Below are positions 333 through 44,770 of a DNA stretch of 64,000 nucleotides, piece by piece. The notes under the pieces are model-generated. The model did not search any database. It was given only the letters and a program-made list of their open reading frames with translations, and was not told where the DNA came from. The translations under genes were made by a program, and so were the position numbers. The DNA lies in sequence record OR805294.1. One strand, written 5' to 3'. Every line of letters starts with the position of its first letter. Position 1 is the stretch's first letter.

Positions 333-621
333 TTATAGCAAAGTATATGAACCGAAAGGCGCACTATATAGAATTCGTCGCATTTCTGACGGTGCATTTA
401 GCACAGGGTCTTCCAGTCCGGCGTTTGTAACTTCTGGTCCGGGAAAAGTATTCAATACTTTAGGTAAACTTAGATCTCATCTTACTACTATTCGTAATAA
501 CCCGGTTTTACAAGACATATACAACGAATGTGAAATTGTTCAGTATGTAGAAGCTGACCAGCCAACATACACTCTAGCTGAACACACAGAATTACTTATA
601 CTTAAAAAGTTAACACAATAA
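316..621 (+). CDS. hypothetical phage protein
   Basis: TTG-start ORF overlapping the previous stop; normal protein composition. Confidence 0.6.
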   Translation: MTKKINYSKVYEPKGALYRIRRISDGAFSTGSSSPAFVTSGPGKVFNTLGKLRSHLTTIRNNPVLQDIYNECEIVQYVEADQPTYTLAEHTELLILKKLTQ

Positions 622-725
622 CGCGCTTTACTGCGCGTTAATTTGCGCGTATGCTGCAAAAACATGTAACACTAGAGCTTATATATGCTTATGCTTAAAA
701 AGCTGTATAACGCAATTTATGCGTT
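590..725. other. GA/TC-depleted island
   Basis: only one GA (675-676) and no TC in 136 nt; rich in GCGC/TGCA. Confidence 0.6.
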
Positions 726-1161
726 CCTTAACGAACTTGCTTATATAAAATATATAAGATTCTATGTCTTCTTTAAATGTGTTCATAAGCATCATGTATC
801 GGAAATACTTCTGTTAAGTAATCTAGCAGGTACGACTATAGGAGCATATAGATTTGAACGTCTCGGAAGCATGGATTATTGCACTATATCGATTGACATG
901 CCACTCGACGAGGATTATTTTATTGCCTGTAATACAAAAGGAATTATTTCTGTAGCAAAATGTAATCTCATATCAATGAATTTTTATGATTTTGGTACAC
1001 AATTATCAAACTATTACTTTTTTAAATACGACAATACATCGAATGGTTCGTTTTTTGTGTATCCATCCAAAAATTATTTAGTACATCCAGAAGTAATATC
1101 TTATATAAAGAAATATAATAATGAGAGTTTATATAAAAGAACAACGTATTTGCCGGGGTAA
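685..1161 (+). CDS. hypothetical protein (true start probably downstream)
   Basis: 158-aa ORF whose N-terminus lies in the GA/TC-poor island. Confidence 0.5.
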   Translation: MLMLKKLYNAIYAFLNELAYIKYIRFYVFFKCVHKHHVSEILLLSNLAGTTIGAYRFERLGSMDYCTISIDMPLDEDYFIACNTKGIISVAKCNLISMNFYDFGTQLSNYYFFKYDNTSNGSFFVYPSKNYLVHPEVISYIKKYNNESLYKRTTYLPG

Positions 1162-1360
1162 TGCCGAAATATACGATATAGTTATCAGACAGGAAGGTTA
1201 TTTAGAATTTCTAGAAGAAACAGAAACAGAATACACAGGATTTCTAAATGTTGTTAAAATATACAAATGCACCGATGGGTATCAAAAACGAATTCATACA
1301 ACAAAACAGAAGTTTTCTTTTCCGAAAGATTCTGACGAAATACTTATAATAGAATTATAG
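1121..1360 (+). CDS. hypothetical protein
   Basis: ORF coupled to its neighbours. Confidence 0.55.
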   Translation: MRVYIKEQRICRGNAEIYDIVIRQEGYLEFLEETETEYTGFLNVVKIYKCTDGYQKRIHTTKQKFSFPKDSDEILIIEL

Positions 1361-1370
1361 GAATTTCTGC

Positions 1371-1937
1371 ATGACTACAACTGAGGCAACTCTACTTAGT
1401 CTCGCTATCGCTGCAAGTTGTATGGTAGCAGACAAAATGTATTCTAAAGAATTTGAATACATTACTAACCTTAAAATAAAAGAAGAAAAACTAAAAGAAG
1501 AATTTGCTATAAATGATGAAGATAAAATAAAATCATACATAGCATTGTGTAAAAGAAGAAAGAATTGCAGGGCAGTAGCAGAAGCAATATATTATGAAGC
1601 GCGTAGTGAATCTAGGATAGGAATGCAAGGTGTAGCATTTACGATATTAAATAGAGCCATGAATCCTACTAGATGGCCCAACACCCCGTACAGTGTGGTT
1701 TACTATAAATGCCAATTTAGTTATACTTGCGACGGCAGTAGAAAACAAGGTTTTAAAGAAAAAGATAAATGGGATTTAGCTAATATAGTAGCATATAGGG
1801 CTATAAATAGACTATCTAGCGATCCCACCAACGGCGCTGATCATTATTATGCACCGCACAGAGTAAGCAAACCGTATTGGGCAAAGAAAATGAGAAAAAC
1901 TGCCAAATTAGGTAATCATGTGTTTTATAAATCGTAA
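1371..1937 (+). CDS. SleB-like cell wall hydrolase (Hydrolase_2)
   Basis: motifs AEAIYYEARSE, VAFTILNR, VVYYKCQFS, DPTNGADHYY, KLGNHVFY; hydrophobic N-terminus. Confidence 0.9.
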   Translation: MTTTEATLLSLAIAASCMVADKMYSKEFEYITNLKIKEEKLKEEFAINDEDKIKSYIALCKRRKNCRAVAEAIYYEARSESRIGMQGVAFTILNRAMNPTRWPNTPYSVVYYKCQFSYTCDGSRKQGFKEKDKWDLANIVAYRAINRLSSDPTNGADHYYAPHRVSKPYWAKKMRKTAKLGNHVFYKS

Positions 1938-1952
1938 TGAGGGGATTATACT

Positions 1953-2183
1953 ATGGTATGCAAAACAATAACAAAAGAAATGTTTGAAATGCAATATAAT
2001 ATAAGAAACTATTCTACCGTTGCTCATATATATATTAGCACAAGAGCAAATATAATAGAAATATATTATAAAACCCCGTTTAACCAGGGCATAGTATTGC
2101 AAAATTATTACGTTAACGAAGAATGCGACCAATATATACAGTCTTGTAGATTATATAGGGAATATGAAAAAAATAGAATATAA
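1953..2183 (+). CDS. hypothetical protein
   Basis: GAGG RBS upstream; coupled ORF. Confidence 0.55.
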   Translation: MVCKTITKEMFEMQYNIRNYSTVAHIYISTRANIIEIYYKTPFNQGIVLQNYYVNEECDQYIQSCRLYREYEKNRI

Positions 2184-2463
2184 AATAAATCTTTTAATCG
2201 AAGAAATAAAAGAGTTTAAAAGAACAAAAAAAGAACTCAATGAAGACCTAATGCAACATTATACAAAGTTCTATTCAGAACAAGTTAAAGATGTTTATTT
2301 TAGATCTTTAAATTTTAGACGAAATTCTGTAAAACAACTTATTAAACAATTGCATACAGTATGTAAACAAGCTAAAATAAAATTACTTTATATTAAAGCT
2401 AAGTCTTCAACTAAACAGCAGAGGCAAAAATGTAATAAAGTAAACGTAACTAGACGAACATAA
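2164..2463 (+). CDS. Lys-rich hypothetical protein
   Basis: coupled ORF. Confidence 0.5.
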   Translation: MKKIEYKINLLIEEIKEFKRTKKELNEDLMQHYTKFYSEQVKDVYFRSLNFRRNSVKQLIKQLHTVCKQAKIKLLYIKAKSSTKQQRQKCNKVNVTRRT

Positions 2464-2537
2464 TATTTTGCGCTATACTGTATATCAAGCTAAGAAGCTT
2501 AACAAACAACATTAATACAACCGAGAGGTAATTTGCA

Positions 2538-2897
2538 ATGGCAAAAAGCTACGAAGAAGCATGGGCACTGGCAGAATTTCCCGAGCACTCGAAGGTCGTC
2601 GATGGTCAAGTCGGCGGCGTGACCGAATACGTTCTCCAGGAAATCGACTCCTACTGCATCGTCGACAAGGACGGCAACAAGGTGTGGCTGAACATTCAGG
2701 GCAACATGCACCGCTTGCTCGGTCCGGCCACCCACATCAACGGGAAAAAGAAAAACGCCTGGGCAGTGGACGGTGACATCATCCGCACCTGGGATGAATA
2801 CGAAAAAGCCGTCGGCGACCGGGTGCCGAAAGAGCACATTATGATGCTCAAGCTTCAACACGGCGACGATCAGTTCGAGTTCGACACCGACGACTAA
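2538..2897 (+). CDS. GC-rich, host-codon-adapted hypothetical (likely early) protein
   Basis: abrupt GC rise confined to the ORF, C/G third positions, GAGGT RBS. Confidence 0.9.
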   Translation: MAKSYEEAWALAEFPEHSKVVDGQVGGVTEYVLQEIDSYCIVDKDGNKVWLNIQGNMHRLLGPATHINGKKKNAWAVDGDIIRTWDEYEKAVGDRVPKEHIMMLKLQHGDDQFEFDTDD

Positions 2898-2919
2898 ACC
2901 GGCGGCGAGTGCGCTCGGT

Positions 2920-2960
2920 TTATATAAAATAAGGGACTTTATGTCCCTTATTTTATATAA
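2920..2960. terminator. perfect 18-bp inverted repeat (terminator or processing hairpin)
   Basis: TTATATAAAATAAGGGAC-tttat-GTCCCTTATTTTATATAA. Confidence 0.75.
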
Positions 2961-3083
2961 GAAATAAACAATAAATGACATTTTTAGTTGAATGTTGCTT
3001 GCAATCATGTATTTTTGAATATAATAATTAATGTAAAATATTAGTCGTTTCTGTAATTATATTTTCATAATAGGATATATAGT

Positions 3084-3692
3084 GTGTTCAAAAATGAATG
3101 TTTATTAGTAGGTGTGACTGAAGTTATTGCGAATATATTTTTATTTTCTAAATGTGTTTCTGAATGCAAACCAGCTGGCACATATGTAAGTAATCAATCT
3201 ATAATCTTACGATGGTACTCAACTGGTATAGTAAGTGAAGTTATATATAATATCAAAATAGTGCCTTCTGTAAATAATAAATTATTTTTAAATACGATAA
3301 CATGGTCTGATGGTCATTATGCCTACCAAGACATTAAAAAACCGACCAAAGTATCAGATGTATTACATACTAATAAATATGAAACTTCGTTTGCTATCCA
3401 TTTTAAAAACATATCGTTTGATATGTTTATTCCTTTTATAGTAAAGGAAGTAAGAGAATGTCAATTTACAATACACGATCTACGGTACATAACAACGATT
3501 CCCATAGGATCGCGAAATACCAATTATAAAATAATATCGTATGTAAATGATACAGATTTATGTAATGTACATTTTAGTGCCAGGAATTACCTGTACTTTT
3601 CATTGACCACATATAATTATAATACTATATATAAACACACATTCAAAATATCAGAACAGTTTAGTATATGGGATATTGATGAAATATGTTAA
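3084..3692 (+). CDS. hypothetical protein
   Basis: 202-aa ORF, GTG start after AGGA. Confidence 0.65.
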   Translation: MFKNECLLVGVTEVIANIFLFSKCVSECKPAGTYVSNQSIILRWYSTGIVSEVIYNIKIVPSVNNKLFLNTITWSDGHYAYQDIKKPTKVSDVLHTNKYETSFAIHFKNISFDMFIPFIVKEVRECQFTIHDLRYITTIPIGSRNTNYKIISYVNDTDLCNVHFSARNYLYFSLTTYNYNTIYKHTFKISEQFSIWDIDEIC

Positions 3693-4294
3693 ATTTAAAA
3701 GAAATAAGAAAGTCTGAATACGGGAATATATTTGGAGTTAGCTATCTTATATATAACTGCAGACTTTCTAGTTTCGATGTAGTTCGAAATTCATGCATAA
3801 TATGTTTTGAGAGCAATTTTTATAATTGTATAATTCATTCGTGCGAATTGGATTTATTTTATTATAAATATGGATCTTTAAATGACGATCCAGAAAATAA
3901 TATCTATCCTACTGAAATTAAATTATTAAATTCAAACAAATTAAAGAAGAATAGAATTTTTTATTCTTATATATCTATAATATCCAAAGCAAATGAGTTA
4001 TACAAATATATTCCCTATATACTATCTAGGATTGCATCCAATTCTATCGTACTTCATAATTACAAAAACTTGAATATAGGTGATTACGGCGGTTTTATAC
4101 GTGTGTGGACATACTGGACTAATTCACACATACTCGGAGGACCTAATGTAAGTGTAAATAATTCGGCTATAACTGTTATATTTCCTAAGATCAATAAAAC
4201 AGAATACAGCATGCCTGTAATAGAATCCTATAATTTGGTATTAGAAATAGATAAAAACTCTAATATAATTTTTCCGGTATTAATAAATGAATGA
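3686..4294 (+). CDS. hypothetical protein
   Basis: 202-aa coupled ORF. Confidence 0.65.
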   Translation: MLNLKEIRKSEYGNIFGVSYLIYNCRLSSFDVVRNSCIICFESNFYNCIIHSCELDLFYYKYGSLNDDPENNIYPTEIKLLNSNKLKKNRIFYSYISIISKANELYKYIPYILSRIASNSIVLHNYKNLNIGDYGGFIRVWTYWTNSHILGGPNVSVNNSAITVIFPKINKTEYSMPVIESYNLVLEIDKNSNIIFPVLINE

Positions 4295-12532: not shown

Positions 12533-12856
12533 ATGGTCTCTGTTAATATACCGTTAATTGTATCTAATAAAATATATAAAATGGAATTTGAATATGGCAA
12601 GGATGATGTGTTATATTTGTGTATGTATAGTGACAATAATACATATCTACATAATATAATAGTCAATACAGAATTTTCTATGCTTTTTGTTCAATGTATG
12701 GGTAAAACTATACCACTAGAATCGATATTATATATCCAGTCAAATATAAAAACAATAAGTGTGACTGATGATTATGGCTGTATAACCCTACATAACGATA
12801 CATTTTGTTTATGTACTGGATATTTTCAGGAAAAAGTTAAATTTTTTGCAGATTAA
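12533..12856 (+). CDS. paralog-array family, divergent member
   Basis: ILYIQSNIKTI motif. Confidence 0.55.
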   Translation: MVSVNIPLIVSNKIYKMEFEYGKDDVLYLCMYSDNNTYLHNIIVNTEFSMLFVQCMGKTIPLESILYIQSNIKTISVTDDYGCITLHNDTFCLCTGYFQEKVKFFAD

Positions 12857-12858
12857 AT

Positions 12859-13185
12859 ATGAATGAACAAATTATATTATGTTTTCAAGCATGCATTAAT
12901 AAATTTGCCTACTTAGGAAACCCAAAAATAAGATTATTTAGAATCGGTAAAAGTGTCAAGATATCTGCACGGAATTATAATAATATGGATATAGGTTCGT
13001 TTGACAGTAATTTGAAATTTTTATTATATATCGATAGTATCCAAGATATTGGAATATATGATGAAAATTTTATATTTTATATATCAATAAATTCAGACGA
13101 AATATCATTTTTGGGTTCTACAGGTACAGCACAAGTAGATACTGAACTTGGAATTACTATATTCTTTACCCGCACCAAAACATAA
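12859..13185 (+). CDS. paralog-array family member
   Basis: IILCFQACINKF / FIFYISINSDEI. Confidence 0.6.
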   Translation: MNEQIILCFQACINKFAYLGNPKIRLFRIGKSVKISARNYNNMDIGSFDSNLKFLLYIDSIQDIGIYDENFIFYISINSDEISFLGSTGTAQVDTELGITIFFTRTKT

Positions 13186-13194
13186 TCCTAAATT

Positions 13195-13452
13195 ATGATA
13201 TTCATTGCACAGCGACTATTATATAACATAACATATAATAAAAATACAATACTGTTCGGTTGTTTTAATAGTGGATATTTTTTAATTAATAGAAGAAGTG
13301 GTATTGGATTCTTATTTACAGATATATGTATGAAACGAATAAAATGCATTTATTTCATATTATATATTTCGCGTAATACTAATACTATAGGCAAAGATGC
13401 AATCTATATTAAAGATTTAGAACTACTCAGAGCAATGCACATACTTCGATGA
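13195..13452 (+). CDS. paralog-array family member
   Basis: MIFIAQRLLYNI / FILYISRNTNTI. Confidence 0.6.
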   Translation: MIFIAQRLLYNITYNKNTILFGCFNSGYFLINRRSGIGFLFTDICMKRIKCIYFILYISRNTNTIGKDAIYIKDLELLRAMHILR

Positions 13453-13757
13453 ATATAAATTTAATACTGCTACTTCAAAGATGTACGTCTGTAATAGGAG
13501 GATTCCAACGCGGCGGCGCAACACTTATCCATATTTATAGTGATTTTAATTTATCTGCTATAATGACGTTATACAAAAGAAGATGCAAATGCATTGTATT
13601 TACTGACATTTTGTTTAACGACATTAAAGACGGTTCTATAGATATCATTATCTATATAAGTAAGAATGCAAACCTAATACACGATAAATTTGCCTACATA
13701 GACACATCTGTTACAGATGAATCTTCTGTTCCTTTACACGATATGACAGGAATATGA
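13449..13757 (+). CDS. paralog-array family member
   Basis: LILLLQRCTSVI / IIIYISKNANLI. Confidence 0.65.
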   Translation: MNINLILLLQRCTSVIGGFQRGGATLIHIYSDFNLSAIMTLYKRRCKCIVFTDILFNDIKDGSIDIIIYISKNANLIHDKFAYIDTSVTDESSVPLHDMTGI

Positions 13758-25270: not shown

Positions 25271-25618
25271 ATGAATACTATAATAACGCTAAGTGCTTTG
25301 CAGGAAACAATACAAAGAGACGAATGGTCAGACCGCTATCATTTTGTTATTAAAGATAGGTATGGTAGTGATATATTGTATTGTATAGAATACGAAAATT
25401 CATTACAGTCGTGGTTTATAGACTATACATATAACAATAGTTTGATATACTTAGATATATTTAAAATTCAGCTATTAACACAAAAAATATCATCTTATAC
25501 TAGTAACAGAACAGTAGTATTATTATCAGACAGTATCTCGAATGTAATTTTATATTACGAAATAGCAAATGATAGTATTAGTAGTAAAAATTATTCATCC
25601 GAAATAGTATTAACATAA
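25271..25618 (+). CDS. paralog-array family, divergent member
   Basis: MNTIITLSALQETI; size and composition. Confidence 0.45.
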   Translation: MNTIITLSALQETIQRDEWSDRYHFVIKDRYGSDILYCIEYENSLQSWFIDYTYNNSLIYLDIFKIQLLTQKISSYTSNRTVVLLSDSISNVILYYEIANDSISSKNYSSEIVLT

Positions 25619-28170: not shown

Positions 28171-28494
28171 ATGAATTTAATATTTTGTATAGCTAGCATT
28201 GATAATATACAAATAGGTATAGACCGGTCAATCGGACATATAAACAATATAATATATATTCGAACTAGCCCCTCTAATGATATAATCAAATATATAACAG
28301 AAGTAAAATATGGTAAAACAGTATCACTTATGTTAAATCTCGATACATCAGTATTTAAAGAATTATTTATTTTTATTTTGTCATGTAAATGTAAACACAT
28401 CACTGAACTAAGAATATACGATAAAGTAGTATTTTATTTTTATTCTGATAACAGAAGATCTTTAACAGATTTGTTATATTACATAGGTCAGTGA
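28171..28494 (+). CDS. paralog-array family member
   Basis: MNLIFCIASIDNI / IFILSCKCKHI. Confidence 0.55.
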   Translation: MNLIFCIASIDNIQIGIDRSIGHINNIIYIRTSPSNDIIKYITEVKYGKTVSLMLNLDTSVFKELFIFILSCKCKHITELRIYDKVVFYFYSDNRRSLTDLLYYIGQ

Positions 28495-28606
28495 CAGTAC
28501 ATTTACAGAAAAATATAATATCTTATGTATTATTCATTATAAAAACTCTGTTGTGTTATTAAGTGTTGTATGTTAGTGTGCAAGTTAATTAAATGCGGAA
28601 CACCAA

Positions 28607-28900
28607 ATGGATATTATTCTTTTTATATCAAATAATACATACTATATAATATCAACGAGTAATAGCACATTCTTATTATACAGATTTGATCAAAAATGTA
28701 TCTATGTTGCAACAAAAAATCTTAATTCACATCCGGTAGTGATAGACGACGGAAGTAATGGCTGGGGGACAATATATGAGATTCCCGCACTAGTTCAGTT
28801 TTACACAGATATTTTTAAATTTTCTGTGCATCACGAATTAATTCAAATATATGTGCTCACAAAAGTAGGTCAATTTTTCTCTAAGATTGTTACTTACTAA
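28607..28900 (+). CDS. paralog-array family member
   Basis: MDIILFISNNTYYI / ALVQFYTDIF. Confidence 0.65.
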   Translation: MDIILFISNNTYYIISTSNSTFLLYRFDQKCIYVATKNLNSHPVVIDDGSNGWGTIYEIPALVQFYTDIFKFSVHHELIQIYVLTKVGQFFSKIVTY

Positions 28901-29222
28901 TATAATTGTACAATACATAGGTAATTTGATGGACAATATATTTTATATTTCGTACGAGATAGCTAGTTGCCGGTATTCTAGTCCAACTACATTTCAATTA
29001 ATTAATAAACACAATAGAGAATTTTATGCAATACGTTTGGCTGCAGGATACCCAAGCGACATTTTCGATTTTGATTGGAAACAAAAAATCTTATTAACGT
29101 CTAAATATTGTAATAAGCTTTTATTTCTTATTAGTAGAGAAAAGATACAGGTAACTACCAAGTTAAGGATATTTTATTGCCTTAGTAACGTATCTGCTAA
29201 ATCGGATCAAGTTACACTATGA
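28887..29222 (+). CDS. paralog-array family member
   Basis: MDNIFYISYEIAS / LLFLISREKI. Confidence 0.55.
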   Translation: MLLTNIIVQYIGNLMDNIFYISYEIASCRYSSPTTFQLINKHNREFYAIRLAAGYPSDIFDFDWKQKILLTSKYCNKLLFLISREKIQVTTKLRIFYCLSNVSAKSDQVTL

Positions 29223-29443
29223 ATATCATACCATTAATTTTAATTAGTGTATACTAGTTATTGTGACACTATTAAATATGTCAATTAGATAAAATAAATT
29301 ATTAATGAAAAATCTATTTCCTACCGGATGCATATTTAATATATTGGTATTATCTTATCACACAGATACAATATATGCTGCATGTTACTCAGATTGTCGT
29401 GTTATTGCACTAAACAGTTATTATACATACTATATACCTTTAA

Positions 29444-29704
29444 ATGACTAAATTAATACTTACAATTTCTATTAATACCAAACAGATAGCATTATTAAAC
29501 GATGTTGTGCATTTTCGAAATTATAATAAAGCGGTATACTTTATAAATTTTTTATCTAAATCTAAGTCATTAATTATTGTGGACGAGTTAATAACAGATA
29601 GTTTTATTATCTTTTATATAAGTGAAAATTGTTCCGAAATTTATGTCACCCCTAGATATGCTTTTATATGTAATTTCGATGGGGTTGGGTTTTTTAGATC
29701 ATAA
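29444..29704 (+). CDS. paralog-array family member
   Basis: LILTISINTKQI / IIFYISENCSEI. Confidence 0.65.
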   Translation: MTKLILTISINTKQIALLNDVVHFRNYNKAVYFINFLSKSKSLIIVDELITDSFIIFYISENCSEIYVTPRYAFICNFDGVGFFRS

Positions 29705-29735
29705 CTAGTTGTGTTAATTAGGATAACTATACTTA

Positions 29736-30029
29736 ATGAAATATGATTTTATATTACATATGAGTAATAACACAAATTGTATTATATTCGACACAAGTAT
29801 TACCTTTGTTGACAACAAAGGTATATTCTTTTATAAAATAATACCAATACACTTGCATGGTATGTGTAATTTTCCTTATATAGATAACAGTTGGTCAAAC
29901 TATATTTCATTACCTATAATTATACAATATTATACAAATAAACTGGTATATTTACCGTCTATTATACTTTTTCGTCAAAATAAATCTAATATATCAGCAG
30001 ATACTGTATTTCGTACAAATATGTTATGA
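29736..30029 (+). CDS. paralog-array family member
   Basis: FILHMSNNTNCI / IIIQYYTNKL. Confidence 0.65.
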   Translation: MKYDFILHMSNNTNCIIFDTSITFVDNKGIFFYKIIPIHLHGMCNFPYIDNSWSNYISLPIIIQYYTNKLVYLPSIILFRQNKSNISADTVFRTNML

Positions 30030-30307
30030 ACGATGAATTAATACTATTGTTAAGTAAAGAGACTTATATAACTTCATTTTCTCATAACTGTGTAGACTTG
30101 TTCAGCGCTGCTGGAATTATATTTTATAGCATATCTATACCATACATGGGTTCCCGTGCTGCTAGCAGAATACATCATTTATATTTGTGTGTGTTTACAC
30201 TATCTCCTTTTATAATACAATCATTTTGTCGTGTAATATTCGATAATAAGTATACAATTGGCATAGCACATAATGGCACACTTATATGGAAAGGTCTTTA
30301 CCAATAA
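30026..30307 (+). CDS. paralog-array family member
   Basis: LILLLSKETYI / FIIQSFCRVI. Confidence 0.6.
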   Translation: MNDELILLLSKETYITSFSHNCVDLFSAAGIIFYSISIPYMGSRAASRIHHLYLCVFTLSPFIIQSFCRVIFDNKYTIGIAHNGTLIWKGLYQ

Positions 30308-30376
30308 CTTTTTCAGTTGCTATAACATGCACAATGTGCAATAATAAAAAACAATGTGCAATTGTGAATAAAATAC

Positions 30377-30682
30377 ATGAATATTATCATTAACATTCAA
30401 GCATCAACATCCGAAATCTTCTTTGATACAGACTGTATCTCGTTAATGACTAGCTTAAGCGGTTATGTTCTTTCGATAAACCGAAGAACAGGAAAAGGCG
30501 CAGTTGTACTTCATAACATAAAGTTAGATTCCATATATCGTATTCTACTATTACAGCACACAACTACATCACTTGTTGTATGGGGTGCTATAGACATTAA
30601 AGTATCATTTAAAGACATAGCCGATGAATACATTTTCCTTGCTATAGGAAGAAGATATTATCACGGCGAATGGTTAAAATAA
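30377..30682 (+). CDS. paralog-array family member
   Basis: IIINIQASTSEI / ILLLQHTTTSL. Confidence 0.65.
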   Translation: MNIIINIQASTSEIFFDTDCISLMTSLSGYVLSINRRTGKGAVVLHNIKLDSIYRILLLQHTTTSLVVWGAIDIKVSFKDIADEYIFLAIGRRYYHGEWLK

Positions 30683-30951
30683 TTCTGACTATGCATAAAA
30701 TTTATTATGACGAAATTTTAGAAATATCTAATAAAGCTAGATTAATTGTAATTTATTCTGGCATATGTTCTATATACGCAAAACCTTCTGTTTATTATAA
30801 TGTAAATTATAACTTTTATAGTAATCCATTTAGTTTGTGGAATAGGGCAGTATTTATAGCATCTAAACAATGCGGGTACATAGCATTCACTGATAACCGG
30901 GTGCGTATATTAACTGATAAAAAAATAATGTGGTATTATAATTATCTATAA
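30670..30951 (+). CDS. paralog-array family, divergent member
   Basis: IILTMHKIYYDEI / VFIASKQCGYI. Confidence 0.5.
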   Translation: MVKIILTMHKIYYDEILEISNKARLIVIYSGICSIYAKPSVYYNVNYNFYSNPFSLWNRAVFIASKQCGYIAFTDNRVRILTDKKIMWYYNYL

Positions 30952-30966
30952 GGTATAGATCGAAAA

Positions 30967-31275
30967 ATGGTATATAAAATACCGAACGACAAGTGTATGT
31001 TGTTAATATTTCTGAGTAGTATAGCTGATACTATATCTATAGAAATCAGTTTTAGAAAAAGAATTAGAAAATGTTTGTACACACTAAAAATATACAAAGG
31101 TGATAACAATTGCATATTTATAAATGGCGTACTATTATTTAAAAAAGTTATATGTAACGATATGATAATTCCTATTTTGATACAATCAGTCACAAGATCA
31201 ATATCAATGCATAACGACTTCTTAGAAGTATTTTCTAACAAATATTATTTGACGTTATTTAGAAAAATGACATAG
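30967..31275 (+). CDS. paralog-array family member
   Basis: LIFLSSIADTI / PILIQSVTRSI. Confidence 0.55.
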   Translation: MVYKIPNDKCMLLIFLSSIADTISIEISFRKRIRKCLYTLKIYKGDNNCIFINGVLLFKKVICNDMIIPILIQSVTRSISMHNDFLEVFSNKYYLTLFRKMT

Positions 31276-31295
31276 TCTTAAATGGGCAAAAATGC

Positions 31296-31547
31296 ATGAT
31301 TGTTATACTTCTTTCACACTTTACACATGAACTAAATGCACAGTTTAATGAATTAGAACTTACTGTGTATGGTAATAGATTAGCGCAAATATATCCAACA
31401 GCATTTATAGATACTAACATTCTATGGCATTATATGAGTAAACCTAATTTCTTACTATTTTATATTTCTAATAATGCAAAAACGATAAAATTAAACCATT
31501 CGCCCCGAATATTATTATATAACTCTCCCATACCTCACTATATTTAA
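31296..31547 (+). CDS. paralog-array family member
   Basis: MIVILLSHFTHEL / LLFYISNNAKTI. Confidence 0.65.
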   Translation: MIVILLSHFTHELNAQFNELELTVYGNRLAQIYPTAFIDTNILWHYMSKPNFLLFYISNNAKTIKLNHSPRILLYNSPIPHYI

Positions 31548-31579
31548 AAAGATAAGTAGGTGAACTATCATTTAAACAG

Positions 31580-31936
31580 TTGTTGTACAGAAACTCTTTT
31601 AATGAGCAGGTTAATGTCCATCTAAACCCTATGTGCAACCTACCATTTATTATATCAAGTAATTCCCACAAACTAATCTACGGACAGTATTTTAACAATA
31701 CAAGAGGTCCAGGCATATACATTGCTAATATAAATGGATTTGTGTTTCTATACTCAGTTGTTACTATTTCTAATTTTCAAATATGTTTTAGTATGCTTAA
31801 CGAAATAGATCCTTTGTATTTGCAATACAAATGCGATTCAATAAAAACAATAAACACACTTATGTATTATAGACTAAATGTCAATTCATTACTTAATACA
31901 ATGTTATGTAAAGAATATTATGAATTTAATATTTGA
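31580..31936 (+). CDS. paralog-array family member
   Basis: FIISSNSHKL / PLYLQYKCDSI. Confidence 0.55.
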   Translation: MLYRNSFNEQVNVHLNPMCNLPFIISSNSHKLIYGQYFNNTRGPGIYIANINGFVFLYSVVTISNFQICFSMLNEIDPLYLQYKCDSIKTINTLMYYRLNVNSLLNTMLCKEYYEFNI

Positions 31937-32204
31937 ATTAGTAAGAAACACCAGTAAAATCATACCGCTTGATGGTCTAAATGCTGCTAGATTTATTCTT
32001 GTAAATACCCATTATATAAAAATAGCATCTTTTTGTTTATCATTTTCTACATGGACCTGCCAGACATTTTTAAGTATAAACCAGTTTCAAATGTCAGAAT
32101 CTACGTTAGTTATCATATCTAATAAAATAAAGAAGATCAAAAGAGTAAAAAAATCATACGCTTTAGTTTTTGACGAATCATATATTCTGTTGAAAATCAA
32201 ATGA
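31878..32204 (+). CDS. paralog-array family member (start probably 31920)
   Basis: MNLIFELVRNTSKI / LVIISNKIKKI. Confidence 0.6.
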   Translation: MSIHYLIQCYVKNIMNLIFELVRNTSKIIPLDGLNAARFILVNTHYIKIASFCLSFSTWTCQTFLSINQFQMSESTLVIISNKIKKIKRVKKSYALVFDESYILLKIK

Positions 32205-32455
32205 TAATACATATCTCACATTTAACACATATAATAAGTGTATATTCTAAATATATAATCGTTACTAATAAAGCTAATGAAATTATACTTTGCAATTACA
32301 TATATAACCAAACTAAAATTTACATTAGCAAATTATTACTAAATATCGATTTAATCTGTTATATTCAACATAACACAAAAACTATTAGTTATCCCATTGT
32401 ACATAGCCATTTTCTAGCGTATCCATATCTTTGCAACAATGCCTTGGTTGTATAA
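32201..32455 (+). CDS. paralog-array family member
   Basis: MIIHISHLTHII / ICYIQHNTKTI. Confidence 0.65.
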   Translation: MIIHISHLTHIISVYSKYIIVTNKANEIILCNYIYNQTKIYISKLLLNIDLICYIQHNTKTISYPIVHSHFLAYPYLCNNALVV

Positions 32456-32745
32456 TTATGGATTTTATTTTCCTACTACAACATAACACTTCTATTATAT
32501 TATTTAATAATATATCATATGGTAGTATAGAATTATACACAAAAGACGAAGTTCCAGTATTAGACATAGAAATATCAAATTCTATGTACATATATCAAGG
32601 TATTTTTAATGACAAAACTGCAATACTCCATCTACAGCAAAATACACACCAGATACAAATAGATATAGATATTATAAAAATGAGAAACATGTACTATAAA
32701 GACATTTATTATATTGTATTACATGGATTATATGGATTATATTAA
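32431..32745 (+). CDS. paralog-array family member, duplicate A (start probably 32458)
   Basis: MDFIFLLQHNTSII / ILHLQQNTHQI. Confidence 0.7.
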   Translation: MQQCLGCIIMDFIFLLQHNTSIILFNNISYGSIELYTKDEVPVLDIEISNSMYIYQGIFNDKTAILHLQQNTHQIQIDIDIIKMRNMYYKDIYYIVLHGLYGLY

Positions 32746-32784
32746 ACTTATCTCCGCAGAAGTAAATCAAATATATCCATATCT

Positions 32785-33096
32785 TTGCAACAATGCCTTG
32801 GTTATATAATTATGGATTTTATTTTCCTACTACAACATAACACTTCTATTATATTATATCGTAATAGTATTATAGAATTATACACAGAAGACGAAATGCC
32901 AGTAATAGACATAGATATAACAAATTCTATGTTCATATATCTAGGTATTTTTAATGACAAAACTGCAATACTCTATCTACAACAAAATACACACACGATA
33001 CATATAGAATCATCAAATTCTTATTATATGATAAGAATGAGAAATATGTACCATAGACACATTTATTATATTATAACACCACATGGATTATATTAA
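32785..33096 (+). CDS. paralog-array family member, duplicate B (start probably 32812)
   Basis: MDFIFLLQHNTSII / ILYLQQNTHTI. Confidence 0.7.
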   Translation: MQQCLGYIIMDFIFLLQHNTSIILYRNSIIELYTEDEMPVIDIDITNSMFIYLGIFNDKTAILYLQQNTHTIHIESSNSYYMIRMRNMYHRHIYYIITPHGLY

Positions 33097-33367
33097 ACTT
33101 ATCTCCGCAGAAGTAAATCAAATTAAAAAATCCGCCCGCCCTGGTTGCACCCGCAACGGCTTAACACTATATAACGTACATGACCAACCTATAATAGAAA
33201 TAAAGATCCAAAAAATAATATCCCGTGCATATGTGCGTGCAAACTACGATAAGTTGTGTAATGAAATCTGTATTCTTTATATACAAAGCCAAACAACTTT
33301 AATATCTACCACACGGAACTCACTAGTAATCTTTACTTCCCACTATATAGTTCACTCTATCATATGA
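33083..33367 (+). CDS. paralog-array family member
   Basis: MDYIKLISAEVNQI / ICILYIQSQTTLI. Confidence 0.7.
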   Translation: MDYIKLISAEVNQIKKSARPGCTRNGLTLYNVHDQPIIEIKIQKIISRAYVRANYDKLCNEICILYIQSQTTLISTTRNSLVIFTSHYIVHSII

Positions 33368-33654
33368 ACCTAATATATACACTGCAACGTAAAACTAGAT
33401 ATATATCCCAATTTGATACTAATTTTGATACTACTTATCGTTTAATTAACTCAGATAGAAAATGCTTTTATCTTATAACACGCAAGAACAAAAAGACCAT
33501 AGTAGACATAGACTATAATATCTTTAATGATATTTTCGGTATATTACATTTACAGTCTAAAACACATATACTACAACGTTCATACTACCTAATAAAAATA
33601 TATGATGTATGTACGGATTTAATATTTTTTATATACCACCATAACCATAAATGA
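33364..33654 (+). CDS. paralog-array family member
   Basis: MNLIYTLQRKTRYI / FGILHLQSKTHIL. Confidence 0.7.
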   Translation: MNLIYTLQRKTRYISQFDTNFDTTYRLINSDRKCFYLITRKNKKTIVDIDYNIFNDIFGILHLQSKTHILQRSYYLIKIYDVCTDLIFFIYHHNHK

Positions 33655-33929
33655 AATTTATTATAACATTACAATCATACACAACTACAATACAGTTTCT
33701 AACTAATGATTTTATATTATATTCTGATAGAAATAGATTATTAGAATTAGGTATATACGATAACAAATTCAACAATTACATATATATCGATAATTTTAAT
33801 AACAATATAATCTTGTGTTATCTTCAACATATAATTTATGCAATGGCCATTCATCCCTTTGGTATAACGATGTATAATAGTAATTTAATAGCAGTTAATA
33901 CAAAATATTACTCAAGAAACCTTTACTAA
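33651..33929 (+). CDS. paralog-array family member
   Basis: MKFIITLQSYTTTI / IILCYLQHIIYAM. Confidence 0.7.
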   Translation: MKFIITLQSYTTTIQFLTNDFILYSDRNRLLELGIYDNKFNNYIYIDNFNNNIILCYLQHIIYAMAIHPFGITMYNSNLIAVNTKYYSRNLY

Positions 33930-33939
33930 AGCAATGAAT

Positions 33940-34560
33940 AAATGATAGAAATACACTACACTATACACTACAAATAATAAGTGATAATGATAAGTGATGA
34001 TAGTGTACAAATAATAAGTGATAATGATAGTGTACAAATAATAAGTGAATTATATAGTACATATTTCGGTGAATACTGATATAATACCAATAGATAGTGA
34101 TAGTGTACAAATAATGATGAATTATATAGTACATATTTCGGTGAACCCTAACATCACCGAAGAAAGAAGGACCAAAATTTTGGAAATCTTGCTCTATAGG
34201 TCCCATTCATTTTCTTTCCAGTTACATTCATTTTCTTCCCAGTTACATTTATATTCTTTCCATTTCTAGCCATTTCTAACCATTTCTAACTATTTTTATA
34301 GATTTTTTTTGGAAAAATCCGTTTTCTGCTATATAGGGACCTTCTTATAAAATATAAGTTCTTTTTCAATAAAAAATATTTTTTTTGAAAATTTCCAATT
34401 CTTGCTATATAGGCCGGTTTCATTATATATTCCCGTTTGCATAACATATACGGAATATAGTATGCTATACGTATATAAACCGTGACTCTAGTCAACTCAC
34501 TTACTGTACGCTTGTTAGCTATTAGATATAATTCCATTTCGTAGTATAACGTATATACAG
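33940..34560. repeat. repeat-rich intergenic region, candidate replication origin
   Basis: 3x GATAGTGTACAAATAAT (33999, 34026, 34099), 2x 28-bp repeat (34046, 34118), pyrimidine tandem repeats 34207-34290, A/T tracts, 3x GCT(A/C)TATAGG. Confidence 0.6.
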
Positions 34561-34571
34561 GAAAACTAGTT

Positions 34572-34841
34572 ATGGATCTGATACTATTTCTTCAACATAA
34601 TACTGTAGAGATGGACTATAGTGAATGGTACGTTCGTCTTAACAACAAGAATGGAAATAATATAGCTATGATTACAGGTAACGGTATTAGACTGTATTAT
34701 AGAAATATCAATTGCTTACTTGGTATTCTTCATTTACAATACTGTAATTATAAATTTTTCATGCATACGGACAATTATATTTCTTTTACTTTTGCTAATA
34801 ATAATAGGTTTGTACATGAAATACATGTTGATTTGAAATAA
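34572..34841 (+). CDS. paralog-array family member
   Basis: MDLILFLQHNTVEM / LGILHLQYCNYKF. Confidence 0.75.
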   Translation: MDLILFLQHNTVEMDYSEWYVRLNNKNGNNIAMITGNGIRLYYRNINCLLGILHLQYCNYKFFMHTDNYISFTFANNNRFVHEIHVDLK

Positions 34842-34844
34842 TAT

Positions 34845-35159
34845 ATGGATTTCATACTATTACTTCAATCTCATTGCAATGAGATTGTATATACCAAGCA
34901 AATTATTAATATGCTTAATGCGCATGATGGGCAGTTCGTATATGGAATTACGTTGCCCATGGGGAGAAAACATATAATATATGATGCATATTGTTTGTAT
35001 AATAATATATGTGATGTGATAGGATTATTGCATATGCAATCTATTCTATCATTTATAGAAGTTAAACATTTAAAATCATTTTCTGGTAAAACAGATACTA
35101 TTGTTAATATGGTGTTTGTTAACGGTTATCTTCAACATGCCATATACATATGGACTTAA
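34845..35159 (+). CDS. paralog-array family member
   Basis: MDFILLLQSHCNEI / IGLLHMQSILSFI. Confidence 0.75.
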   Translation: MDFILLLQSHCNEIVYTKQIINMLNAHDGQFVYGITLPMGRKHIIYDAYCLYNNICDVIGLLHMQSILSFIEVKHLKSFSGKTDTIVNMVFVNGYLQHAIYIWT

Positions 35160-35434
35160 TATTATTATTTCAGTCTCGTTGTTGTAAGATTTGGTATTCA
35201 GATTATATTATAGATATGATCGACTATAGTGATTATACTATAGTATCATTACTACGCCCGCCGAATGGGCGTATGTATGCCTATTGTTCGTGTAACAATA
35301 TAAACAACGAAATTAGTATAATGCATTTGCAGAATAGCATACATTCATTACAAATAAGTTATAGTACCCGTTCTATAATGTGTCGTATGACTAATGTGTA
35401 TGAAGATCTAATTCAATATATTTGTATACTTTAG
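35150..35434 (+). CDS. paralog-array family member
   Basis: MDLILLFQSRCCKI / ISIMHLQNSIHSL. Confidence 0.75.
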   Translation: MDLILLFQSRCCKIWYSDYIIDMIDYSDYTIVSLLRPPNGRMYAYCSCNNINNEISIMHLQNSIHSLQISYSTRSIMCRMTNVYEDLIQYICIL

Positions 35435-35697
35435 TAATGTATTTTATCCTGTTTATACAGAAATTGTGTTGTTCGATTAGAAGGGCTTCGCATGGATTCG
35501 ATATTTTTGATACAAATGAAGTAGCATATTCATTAATAGATCATCATGGTTTCAGTATGAAACATTTTGTTTCGTACTCTGTTATAAACGATGTAATAGG
35601 AATTATACATTTACAAGTGCATACAAATAAGTTTTATTTTTTTATGGATATGATTTGTTTTCTAGATAGTAAAGGCGGTCATTTTTTTAGTTTATAG
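35422..35697 (+). CDS. paralog-array family member
   Basis: MYFILFIQKLCCSI / IGIIHLQVHTNKF. Confidence 0.75.
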   Translation: MYTLVMYFILFIQKLCCSIRRASHGFDIFDTNEVAYSLIDHHGFSMKHFVSYSVINDVIGIIHLQVHTNKFYFFMDMICFLDSKGGHFFSL

Positions 35698-35709
35698 AGG
35701 ACGGAATTT

Positions 35710-35973
35710 GTGTTATTAATATTAATGCTTCAGCGTAATGTCGAATGGATTCTTTATACTGATTGTGAAATTCGACTTGTTCTGCCCGATTATAATACGT
35801 TATATCGTTTTCTAATTCAGATACAGAAAATTAATGGGTATCTAAATTGCCATGCTAGTAATGACATTGTAGGTATGTTTTATTTACAGTACAATTGTGA
35901 TACTATATCATTTAATAGATTTGATGAATTTATGATACTAAACCACAATGGCGTAATAATTTTTGGCTGGTGA
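35710..35973 (+). CDS. paralog-array family member
   Basis: MLLILMLQRNVEWI / VGMFYLQYNCDTI. Confidence 0.75.
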   Translation: MLLILMLQRNVEWILYTDCEIRLVLPDYNTLYRFLIQIQKINGYLNCHASNDIVGMFYLQYNCDTISFNRFDEFMILNHNGVIIFGW

Positions 35974-36272
35974 CTAGTATGGATATTATATTGATCCTTA
36001 GCAGTGAAGTTATAAGAATACAAGGTTGTTTTTATGATATAGAAACTTTACAAATAAGGTTCTTTATTAATGAATACGACTCAATATATTCTTGTAATAA
36101 AATGGGAGGATTTGTTAACTATAAAACATTTCCCAATGAACTACTAGGTATAATTCATTTGCAGCAGAATACACACCGGTTTGTAACACACGGTAAATGT
36201 ATATTTTTTGATAGTGTAGATTTTATTTCTATTCACTGGGAGACTTTGTTTGACACAAACGAATATGTATAA
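35970..36272 (+). CDS. paralog-array family member
   Basis: MDIILILSSEVIRI / LGIIHLQQNTHRF. Confidence 0.75.
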   Translation: MTSMDIILILSSEVIRIQGCFYDIETLQIRFFINEYDSIYSCNKMGGFVNYKTFPNELLGIIHLQQNTHRFVTHGKCIFFDSVDFISIHWETLFDTNEYV

Positions 36273-36276
36273 TGAT

Positions 36277-36503
36277 ATGAATTATATATTACTAATTAGT
36301 AACCAGTCTAAATATATTTCGTTGAAGGCACTTGGATTAACTGTAAAAACACGTGAACCAAGGTTAACTCATTATATTATATTTTAAATATGAACGAAGA
36401 ATATGATATATTATATTTGTCTAACAATACTATGCAAATAACATTTCGTTTTTCAGTATATTGTTTTTATGATAAAACTCGTAGTATTATATATTGTCAA
36501 TAA
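36277..36503 (+). pseudogene. split paralog-array member
   Basis: MNYILLISNQSKYI...stop (36277-36387) and, in another frame, ILYLSNNTMQI (36390-36503). Confidence 0.6.
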
Positions 36504-36516
36504 GACAGAAATATAA

Positions 36517-36831
36517 ATGGATTTAATATTAACACTTCAGCATAAAACTGTGCTAATATCACAGTTTAGTGCATTATTTGTATTTCAAAATATAAACAGT
36601 GATACTATATTTTGTTTGGATATAAGTAGACATGTATATTATTTCGAAATAATATTCAGGTTATATAATAATAAGAATGGCATGGTGTATTTGCAACATG
36701 CCATTAATTCCATTAAGTTTACCTTTAGTTTACAATATCATACAATTCGTGGATATTCTAGTATACCATCTATATATATGTATGATAAAAAATATGCTAT
36801 TGTACACGTACCATATGTTAGGAATACTTAA
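36517..36831 (+). CDS. paralog-array family member
   Basis: MDLILTLQHKTVLI / NGMVYLQHAINSI. Confidence 0.75.
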   Translation: MDLILTLQHKTVLISQFSALFVFQNINSDTIFCLDISRHVYYFEIIFRLYNNKNGMVYLQHAINSIKFTFSLQYHTIRGYSSIPSIYMYDKKYAIVHVPYVRNT

Positions 36832-37130
36832 TGGATCTTATATTATACATTCAGTACAGTGCTCATAAAATAGAAACTGTTTATAAATCATATCTATTTT
36901 ATAGTAATAACTATTCACTTTATTACAGACTGTCTGTATATAAGAGATTATTGGTACCATCGGGTAGTGAATCATATGCAAGGGCTTCGGCTGAATATTC
37001 TGCTATTACAGACAAAATAGGAATTATACACTTACAATCGAAAACACACGCAATATTATTTGTTATAGACAGTATGTGCATTCACGACAAATCGTATCAA
37101 ACACTCCATTATATTATACTAAGGTCATAA
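36831..37130 (+). CDS. paralog-array family member
   Basis: MDLILYIQYSAHKI / IGIIHLQSKTHAI. Confidence 0.75.
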   Translation: MDLILYIQYSAHKIETVYKSYLFYSNNYSLYYRLSVYKRLLVPSGSESYARASAEYSAITDKIGIIHLQSKTHAILFVIDSMCIHDKSYQTLHYIILRS

Positions 37131-43843: not shown

Positions 43844-44770
43844 TTGCCCAACTGCGCCAGAAGGGGAGCAATAGCTCCCCTTTCTTCATGACCACACAAT
43901 CTATATACTACTATGTCTTTAACTATATTTTCTATATCAGCTAATTTGTATACAATAACTTGGTATTCTGCGCAACTGACACAATGGTGTTATATAGACA
44001 TAATAACACGCGACGCTAATATTTTTATAACCTATCCATTTTATAATAACATATTTGTATCTAAAATTAGTTCTAATACAATAATTGAAGAAAAAATTGA
44101 AGAAAAATATGAACACTATATTAGAGATATGTCGTGGAATAAGAAATGACTATATAACAGTCAATAATTTTACATATGACTACTATCTAGAGGTAAACAC
44201 ACCTGCGTTTTCTTTAATGATAATTATTCCGACAGTTCCTATATTAGACAATACTTGCATTACTTTTATAAAAAAGTATTAATATGAATATATTCTTTAT
44301 ATCAAACGGTCTATCTAATATAATATATCATAGAGAGTATGATACACATATGATAGATATTGAGATTAATAATTCTACTGTTATTTGGCTTACATATTCT
44401 TTCAGTGTTGCTAAGGTATCATTTAGATATATTACCTGATTCGTTTTCTTATTGTATGAGTTGCAATTGCAAATTACTCTTATTTGTAATTACATATAAA
44501 CAATCAGTTGCTATTAAAAGTATTTGCTGTTAATATACTATATAACAGTGCAATTGATATTTTAAAATACAGTGTGCAATACATCTTACATGTATTAAAA
44601 TTTGTGTGTTACTTGTTTTGCATTAATGATTAATATACCTCTCTTACAGTACAAAACTCATACTATATACAATTTGTTCGGGCGATCGTTCTCGAAAAGT
44701 ATACAAGTGAGAGATAGCAATCTAATTATACTTGTTAGTTTCTATATAGAAGGTTCTAAATATAGAAAAT

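Follow-up and report, generated by a model that had tools for sequence, protein, structure and literature searches.

Is the tandem array of small paralogous genes in Pseudomonas phage Ettore expanding at ETTORE_0256 (copy A) and ETTORE_0257 (copy B), and does the excess of amino-acid change between these two genes follow from their duplication? Both ideas come from a prediction made from the sequence alone (the original prediction) for the window, which is the whole stretch of 64,000 nucleotides (nt) of sequence record OR805294.1 that was analysed. The locus is a single tandem segmental duplication, with two head-to-tail copies, one novel junction and unduplicated parental flanks. The duplication is an old polymorphism that has been moved across genomic backgrounds by recombination, not an expansion in progress. 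The evidence for positive selection on the gene is suggestive, and the duplication has not detectably changed the selective regime.

The stretch at 31800-33900 matches Ettore, a member of Wroclawvirus, with 100% identity. Ettore is a 288-kb PA5oct-like jumbo phage, whose host of isolation is P. aeruginosa PAO1 (PMC10761892). Ten genomes related to Ettore match at 91-96%. Two copies of the gene are found in four GenBank genomes, which are those of Ettore, Deifobo, Paride (Switzerland) and Callisto (Thailand), and one copy is found in six, which are those of PA5oct, MIJ3, 30-2, 30-3, PAC2 and Cassandra. The G+C content is about 30% across the window and 26% near the duplicated gene.

The two repeat units (Table 1) fall into one blastn alignment with 84% identity counting gaps, 33 mismatches and 28 gap columns (E=4e-117), and a repeat search finds direct repeats at 345-357 nt spacing, which jointly form the tandem unit. 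The predicted duplication of about 350 bp is thus real, with units of 354 and 350 nt. Tandem Repeats Finder does not report a 354-bp period in the window, because the repeat has just two copies, which are of limited identity and carry indels. Both breakpoints lie inside neighbouring genes, as had been proposed. The 5’ breakpoint is located 38-40 nt upstream of the ATG, within the 3’ end of ETTORE_0255, and the 3’ breakpoint lies 41 nt inside ETTORE_0258. Since the unit begins in one gene and ends in the other, copy A is followed by an orphaned start of 0258 (MDYIKLISAEVNQI), which is identical at 41 of 41 positions to 33083-33123. The microhomology at the junction is so short that it argues for illegitimate recombination or slippage, not for homologous exchange. 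The frames of both copies are open, as predicted, and both are annotated.

The junction is spanned by a chimeric mini open reading frame (mini-ORF), made of 14 codons of the 0258 start and 11 codons of the 0255 end, which gives 25 codons, or 28 if counted from the ATG at 32723. It overlaps the stop codon of copy A, just as the start of 0258 normally would, and ends 2 nt before the ATG of copy B; it may help to keep the genes of the operon translationally coupled. All four genomes with both copies share one identical junction, and the single-copy relatives display the parental, unduplicated arrangement. The original statement that the ends of the units remain identical applies to Ettore (96% over the 5’ 93 nt and 100% over the 3’ 41 nt) and to Callisto, but not to Deifobo and Paride, where 8 of 81 positions of the orphaned ends do not match the parental sequence, each polymorphism being present also in other phages.

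Copy B is the ortholog of PA5oct gp457 (EST35_0457, QCG76325.1, “hypothetical protein”), with about 96% identity, 3.5 non-synonymous and 0.5 synonymous nucleotide differences, and equal length save for a 1-codon insertion. Both lie between the orthologs of gp456 and gp458. PA5oct has the gp457 copy only, whereas Ettore has an extra diverged copy upstream and the chimeric mini-ORF at the junction.

The locus exists in three forms, which are B-only in most phages, A+B in some, and A-only in four assemblies. Exact-protein look-ups add further B-type contigs with a single copy, from several assemblies of Logan and ENA, and find the A-type protein in four assemblies, all from one study. In contigs L016 and L017, copy A leads straight into a complete 0258, which in the A-only genomes starts with MDYMDYIKL and has 97 aa. 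The Logan contigs of four runs (X9, X12, X15 and X1) were placed on window positions 32100-33500. The runs X9 and X12 each have a contig that passes over 32732-33082 (351 nt) and has 41 nt fitting both sides, and the middle of copy B is without any contig. A hole in contig coverage proves nothing by itself, but contigs bridge it here, and X15 and X1, processed by the same pipeline, give a different picture; a collapsed assembly is therefore an unlikely source of the A-only form. The contigs of X15 (about 480x) break exactly at the shared ends, whose depth is twice that of the flanks; it drops to single depth, equal to that of the flanks, in the middles of A and B and in the junction contig. 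The sludge metagenome X1 has its own junction contig, a B middle and a Callisto-like A. Across 22 loci and the four runs, the copy number is only 1 or 2 and never higher.

The A-only copy has a derived 12-nt deletion, which is shared with the A copies of Ettore, Deifobo and Paride; Callisto and X1 keep these 12 nt and thus the B-length form. As the deletion is present in the A-only genomes but not in Callisto or X1, the A+B arrangement is older than the deletion, and the A-only form is nested in A+B diversity. The A-only form is best explained by loss of B from an A+B ancestor through recombination across the 41-nt repeat.

The nucleotide tree splits, with 100% bootstrap, into a clade of the A copies and a clade of the B and single-copy sequences. 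The stem of the A clade has 0.17-0.18 substitutions per site, and branches within the clades have at most 0.05. The synonymous divergence (dS) between A and B is 0.068, an imprecise value that comes from 3.2 changes in 50 sites, and dS between whole phages in conserved control genes is 0.03-0.10. The common junction and an A/B dS as large as that between phages place the age of the duplication near that of the diversity sampled in the genus. An expansion caught in the act, as first proposed, does not agree with a junction common to four genomes, X15 and X1, including phages from Switzerland and Thailand, with copies that already differ at the mismatches and gap columns given above, or with changes common to all A copies (about 26 fixed nucleotide differences and indels). 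Contraction has, moreover, already happened, as A-only genomes exist.

Trees of 1.5 kb of upstream flank and 0.8 kb of downstream flank agree neither with the haplotype nor with each other. This incongruence, the alleles of other phages in the orphaned ends and the states shared by A and B together indicate that recombination is active here, and it probably includes exchange between the A and B forms. An A-like YYKNI patch at codons 84-87 is found in the B-type genes of L013-L015 (SRR8948480/83/77) and in copy B of L004 and L005; among its carriers are the B copies of Deifobo and Paride and a B-only contig. The B-type genes that bear this patch include ones in single-copy genomes, which suggests short conversion tracts between the forms or ancestral polymorphism.

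The order of events was duplication, divergence and deletion of the original. One illegitimate recombination event at 1-2 nt of microhomology duplicated about 350 nt, which comprise the whole gene, about 40 nt of the upstream gene end and 41 nt of the downstream gene start. The downstream copy B stayed the ortholog of the single-copy gene. By the time the known A copies split, the upstream copy A had gained three in-frame indels and had about 24 of its amino acids replaced. In one lineage, recombination across the 41-nt repeat later removed B and left A alone.

Table 1. Features of the duplicated locus and of the array that contains it, in window coordinates.
Feature	Position	Strand	Basis or remark
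Repeat unit A, 354 nt	32420..32773	+	Repeat search, blastn
Coding sequence of copy A (ETTORE_0256), 95 aa, diverged copy	32458..32745	+	Open frame, annotation
Orphaned first 41 nt of ETTORE_0258	32732..32772	+	Exact repeat; site of the B deletion in A-only genomes
In-frame chimeric mini-ORF spanning the junction	32732..32809	+	Read from sequence
Duplication junction	32772..32773	no strand	...AAATCAAAT / ATATCC..., 1-2 nt microhomology
Repeat unit B, 350 nt	32774..33123	+	Repeat search, blastn
Coding sequence of copy B (ETTORE_0257), 94 aa, conserved ortholog of the single-copy gene (PA5oct EST35_0457)	32812..33096	+	
ETTORE_0255, upstream array member	32201..32455	+	Last 36-38 nt (from 32420) within the duplicated unit
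ETTORE_0258, downstream array member	33083..33367	+	First 41 nt within the unit
Core of the tandem array of ~95-aa paralogs	28607..37130	+	Iterated hidden Markov model (HMM) on window ORFs, alignment

Copies A and B of Ettore differ by 24 non-synonymous codons, 2 synonymous-only codons and 11 gap codons; the 17 non-synonymous and 2 synonymous differences counted in the original prediction had the right direction and were an undercount. The Nei-Gojobori method (NG86) gives 29.8 non-synonymous (N) and 3.2 synonymous (S) nucleotide changes, with a non-synonymous divergence (dN) of 0.152 and a dS of 0.068. Compared with B, copy A has gained 9 nt (ISY) and, except in Callisto and X1, has lost 12 nt, and 9 nt at its 3’ end are duplicated in tandem (GLYGLY). 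The protein of copy B is close or identical in sequence to that of the single-copy genes, and copy A is the outlier. Ettore copy B has a private 3-nt insertion at 33076-33078 (an extra Pro, ...ITPHGLY), which is found neither in any other B or single-copy sequence nor in the runs X15 and X1.

All four indels are in frame (multiples of 3), and despite a G+C content of 26% the frame stays open over 93-99 codons in 18 of 18 distinct sequences. The two motifs of the protein family are invariant across copies, and the replacements are often conservative (F/Y, L/I, K/R, E/D, S/T, V/I). Open frames in such AT-rich DNA, in-frame indels, invariant motifs and conservative replacements together indicate that the protein is still constrained. 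The original claim of at least no purifying selection is thus borne out for the average ratio of dN to dS (omega), which is described below, but not for these features.

The NG86 omega between A and B is 2.0-2.25, and the single copy of Cassandra compared with other orthologs gives 1.3-3.9; conserved window genes, used as controls, have 0.0-0.15, and most array genes have 0.15-1.0. Maximum-likelihood fits were made with our own GY94-F3x4 implementation on a single tree with 12 or 18 sequences. The one-ratio omega is 2.43 for 12 sequences (nominal p=0.031 against omega=1), with 1.9 for the background and 3.5 for the A stem in the two-ratio model, and 2.61 for 18 sequences (nominal p=0.013), with 2.2 for the background and again 3.5 for the A stem. 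The two-ratio model is no better than the one-ratio model (p=0.53 with 12 and p=0.62 with 18 sequences), and the A stem compared with 1 gives p=0.059 and p=0.056, respectively. When the codons that flank indels are left out of the 18 sequences, omega is 4.2 (nominal p=0.004), with 8.7 for the background and 1.75 for the A stem (p=0.45), so that the signal lies in within-clade variation and not on the post-duplication branch. In a parametric bootstrap under omega=1, the observed likelihood-ratio statistic is reached in 1.3% of 317 replicates. The pooled N:S count of 57:7, compared with a neutral synonymous fraction of 0.20, gives a binomial p=0.04.

The excess of amino-acid change therefore holds as a description (omega 2.2 by NG86 and 2.4-2.6 by maximum likelihood), but not as a consequence of the duplication, since the two-ratio model brings no improvement and the single-copy orthologs show a similar N:S excess. 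Likewise, omega differs from 1, the outcome on which the original prediction had staked its claim, over the whole tree (p=0.013, bootstrap 0.013) and not on the post-duplication branch. In all its forms, the gene is without net purifying selection and is possibly under diversifying selection. We infer that the gene evolves in every form with an omega at or above 1, unlike its neighbours. The probable cause of this omega is diversifying selection acting on a protein for early host interaction or anti-defence, of which A and B would be forms with different specificities; a possible alternative cause is relaxed constraint.

Taken together, a tandem duplication in which A diverged, which persisted as an old polymorphism and which was followed by loss of B, with probable diversifying selection on the gene, is a likely account of the locus. 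Several points weigh against it, mostly against its selective part. The post-duplication branch is not significantly above 1, and a McDonald-Kreitman-type table is flat (fixed 26 N:3 S, polymorphic 31 N:4 S, p=1). The ratio of non-synonymous to synonymous polymorphism (pN/pS) is 2.12 in the duplicated gene and 0.33-1.09 in neighbouring array genes (13 genes tested), an excess with a one-sided p=0.045, which is lost after correction for 13 genes. The whole-tree p-values are nominal, as they come from about 64 changes on one tree despite evident recombination, were computed ignoring multi-nucleotide mutations, and concern a gene that was picked for the tests after its excess was seen. Multi-nucleotide differences are present in 6 of the 24 replaced codons and are clustered close to indels. 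The branch between A and B has no polarising outgroup, and several of the A states are polymorphic among B sequences too (codons 38-40, 47 and 84-87).

The same points bear on the alternative that a dispensable array member has drifted neutrally, with an omega of about 1 and an apparent excess made of sampling noise, multi-nucleotide mutations, indel misalignment and recombination. Such drift, which is possible though on balance unlikely, is consistent with the non-significant branch test, with the multiple changes in a quarter of the replaced codons and with the fixed changes outside the indel region, which are only 14 N:2 S (binomial p=0.35-0.40). It agrees also with the relaxed state of array genes in general (omega 0.3-1.1) and with the existence of B-only, A+B and A-only phages, of which at least the first two kinds grow on PAO1 (PMC10761892). 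Neutrality over the whole tree is, however, rejected with an omega of 2.4-4.2 (nominal p=0.004-0.03, parametric bootstrap 0.013), and a freely drifting gene does not fit the open frame kept in all 18 distinct sequences, the four in-frame indels, the invariance of both motifs and the often conservative replacements.

A mosaic origin would make the A/B differences allelic: the A middle would have been imported by homologous recombination through the conserved ends from a divergent allele of an unsampled phage, or the duplication would have taken place between co-infecting phages with different alleles. The divergence is indeed focused on the middle of the unit (about 15%), the ends having 0-4% in Ettore, and neighbouring array genes show similar allelic divergence between phages (dN 0.10 and dS 0.27 at 31296-31547; dN 0.11 at 25271-25618). 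The incongruent flank trees and the alleles of other phages in the orphaned ends of Deifobo and Paride point in the same direction. Against this origin, which we hold to be quite improbable, no independent single-copy lineage of A type was found, the A-only form being nested in A+B diversity by its 12-nt deletion, and a search of 5.8 billion proteins gives only four clusters at 90% identity for the gene. Micro-conversion from other paralogs of the window as the source of A-specific segments was also rejected, as none of them matches these segments beyond chance (k-mer sharing not above the shuffled expectation).

An assembly artefact, which the original prediction had named as a possible refutation, or a very recent duplication in a laboratory stock limited to the Ettore record, has next to no chance of being correct: its sole support is that identical repeat ends can confuse assemblers, and it is refuted by the junction common to four independently assembled GenBank genomes from two countries, by the de Bruijn contigs of X15, with doubled depth at the shared ends and single depth at the junction, and by the separate junction contig of the sludge metagenome X1. 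Targeted hypermutation of the type made by diversity-generating retroelements, with B as the template and A as the variable copy, would account for adjacent near-copies, one conserved and one variable, that differ in the middle of the unit, but it is rejected as practically impossible by the mismatch spectrum, which is not adenine-specific (B has A at 10 of 33 mismatches in a unit that is 40% A) and has 15 transitions and 18 transversions, by the indels among the differences and by the stability of the A copies, which are almost identical across phages.

A broader version of the duplicate-diverge-delete account is also conceivable. The gp457-type gene would be a hotspot of diversifying selection within a genus-specific panel of early host-interaction genes, its alleles would be renewed by a cycle of duplication, divergence and deletion, and the B, A+B and A haplotypes would represent successive stages found in the wild, with A and B recognising different host targets or countering different defences. 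In this full form the idea is tentative and, in our judgement, unlikely.

The array to which the duplicated gene belongs continues with further members at 12533-13757. Members of the family share an N-terminal motif, MDxILxLQxxT, and a central motif, GIxHLQxxTH. A profile built from 23 window members matches 24 times across the full Ettore record and 26 times across that of PA5oct, and the matches are confined to two zones equivalent to 12.5-13.8 kb and 28.6-37.1 kb of the window. The tandem family has about 25-30 early proteins and is known solely from Wroclawvirus. PA5oct is reported to have a terminal repeat of 39 kb, with numerous early genes that are highly transcribed, and to be transcribed early almost exclusively from the Watson strand; gp450, a member of the array, is named as one of the highly transcribed early genes (PMC7318152). 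The PA5oct array crosses the point where the GenBank record is opened.

Each family protein seems to be an internal duplication, in which MDxILxLQxxT recurs in the middle of the protein as GIxHLQxxTH and the modelled helix with three strands occurs twice. The AlphaFold2 model of B, which was made with the paralog alignment and is moderately confident (predicted local distance difference test, pLDDT, 77.9; predicted template modelling score, pTM, 0.49), consists of this alpha-beta3 arrangement repeated twice. Foldseek searches with the model against PDB and BFVD give nothing below E 0.1, VIA-align gives a best Z of 4.0 (Acb4, AcrF2 and VapB), which is within noise, and the best ESM Atlas score, 0.81, is uninformative. 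Pfam and PHROGs scans of A, B and neighbouring array members (six proteins) give no match, nor does a PADLOC scan of two array proteins. A profile search of 1.84 billion representative proteins has 22 true matches, all from this phage group, and finds no relatives of the family outside Wroclawvirus; the sole other match, P0018, is false, being a repeat protein with an ELILLLQQKA motif. A search of IMG/VR with copy A for related loci finds nothing, and the matches of the junction 20-mer in IMG/VR (3 loci) and in JGI metagenomes (6 loci) are chance matches, otherwise dissimilar to the window. The family is an undescribed set of genus-specific early genes of a jumbo phage, whose position, timing, genus restriction and fast turnover point to a possible early role in host interaction or anti-defence.

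Between the two halves of the array, window 33960-34300 holds a block of 27-, 21- and 10-nt tandem repeats, which is annotated as “CRISPR” in the Deifobo and Paride records and looks like a false positive of a repeat finder. The PA5oct record is opened near the equivalent of window 34285, which is its end, and its array goes on at PA5oct 408-3899; as the record opens at these repeats, they may mark the boundary of the 39-kb terminal repeat. The array member at 31920-32204 is named “CLIP-associating protein 1” in two records (PA5oct EST35_0455 and PAC2 XAI94320.1) and fits the profile of the paralog family like any other member; the name looks spurious, because eight other scanned family members have no Pfam match. 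A sigma-70-like promoter match (GTGACA-17-TATAAT, 11/12), the best of the region, is located at 28491-28519 on the + strand, just upstream of the first core array gene (28607), and the array may owe its early transcription to this predicted promoter. Overall, the AT-rich sequence shows no enrichment in promoter-like sites, with 118 found and 99 expected. Elsewhere in the window, which also includes a cluster of 12 tRNA genes, Ettore and Cassandra differ in the ORF at 43913-44149 (+) by 18 non-synonymous and 0 synonymous changes; probably this frame holds no gene, or the stretch does not code or is read from the opposite strand.

Jumbo phages have large arrays of small early genes, whose turnover is mostly inferred from copy counts. 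At the present locus, one birth-and-death event is legible in natural isolates, from an illegitimate junction through asymmetric divergence and patchy exchange to loss across a 41-nt repeat. The process, made of tandem duplication, asymmetric divergence and loss, is an ordinary one, unusually completely documented, and represents no new kind of mechanism. The analysis also flags the one member of the array that is set apart from its neighbours by its N:S ratio, and copies A and B are a concrete, testable allele pair in phages that are studied for therapy and for the killing of dormant Pseudomonas.

In the gene accordion of poxviruses, amplification of K3L is followed by adaptive substitution and then by contraction. 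The phage locus is similar in that a viral gene gains a tandem copy by illegitimate recombination, one copy changes, and contraction between repeats leaves the changed copy, as in the A-only genomes. Unlike the accordion, it has only 1 or 2 copies and no high-copy state, its duplication is an old one that segregates in nature instead of having arisen under experimental selection, and the changes of copy A are only candidates for adaptive ones (branch omega 3.5, p=0.056). The array as a whole resembles the multigene families of large DNA viruses, such as those of African swine fever virus (ASFV MGFs), which are made of dozens of short, fast-diverging paralogs placed head to tail near a terminal repeat; the Wroclawvirus array is likewise early and group-restricted, and its copy content varies between relatives. 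It differs from the ASFV MGFs in having its own protein family, with its own motifs and a predicted fold of alpha-beta3 twice, and in allowing one birth-and-death event to be traced through each of its steps.

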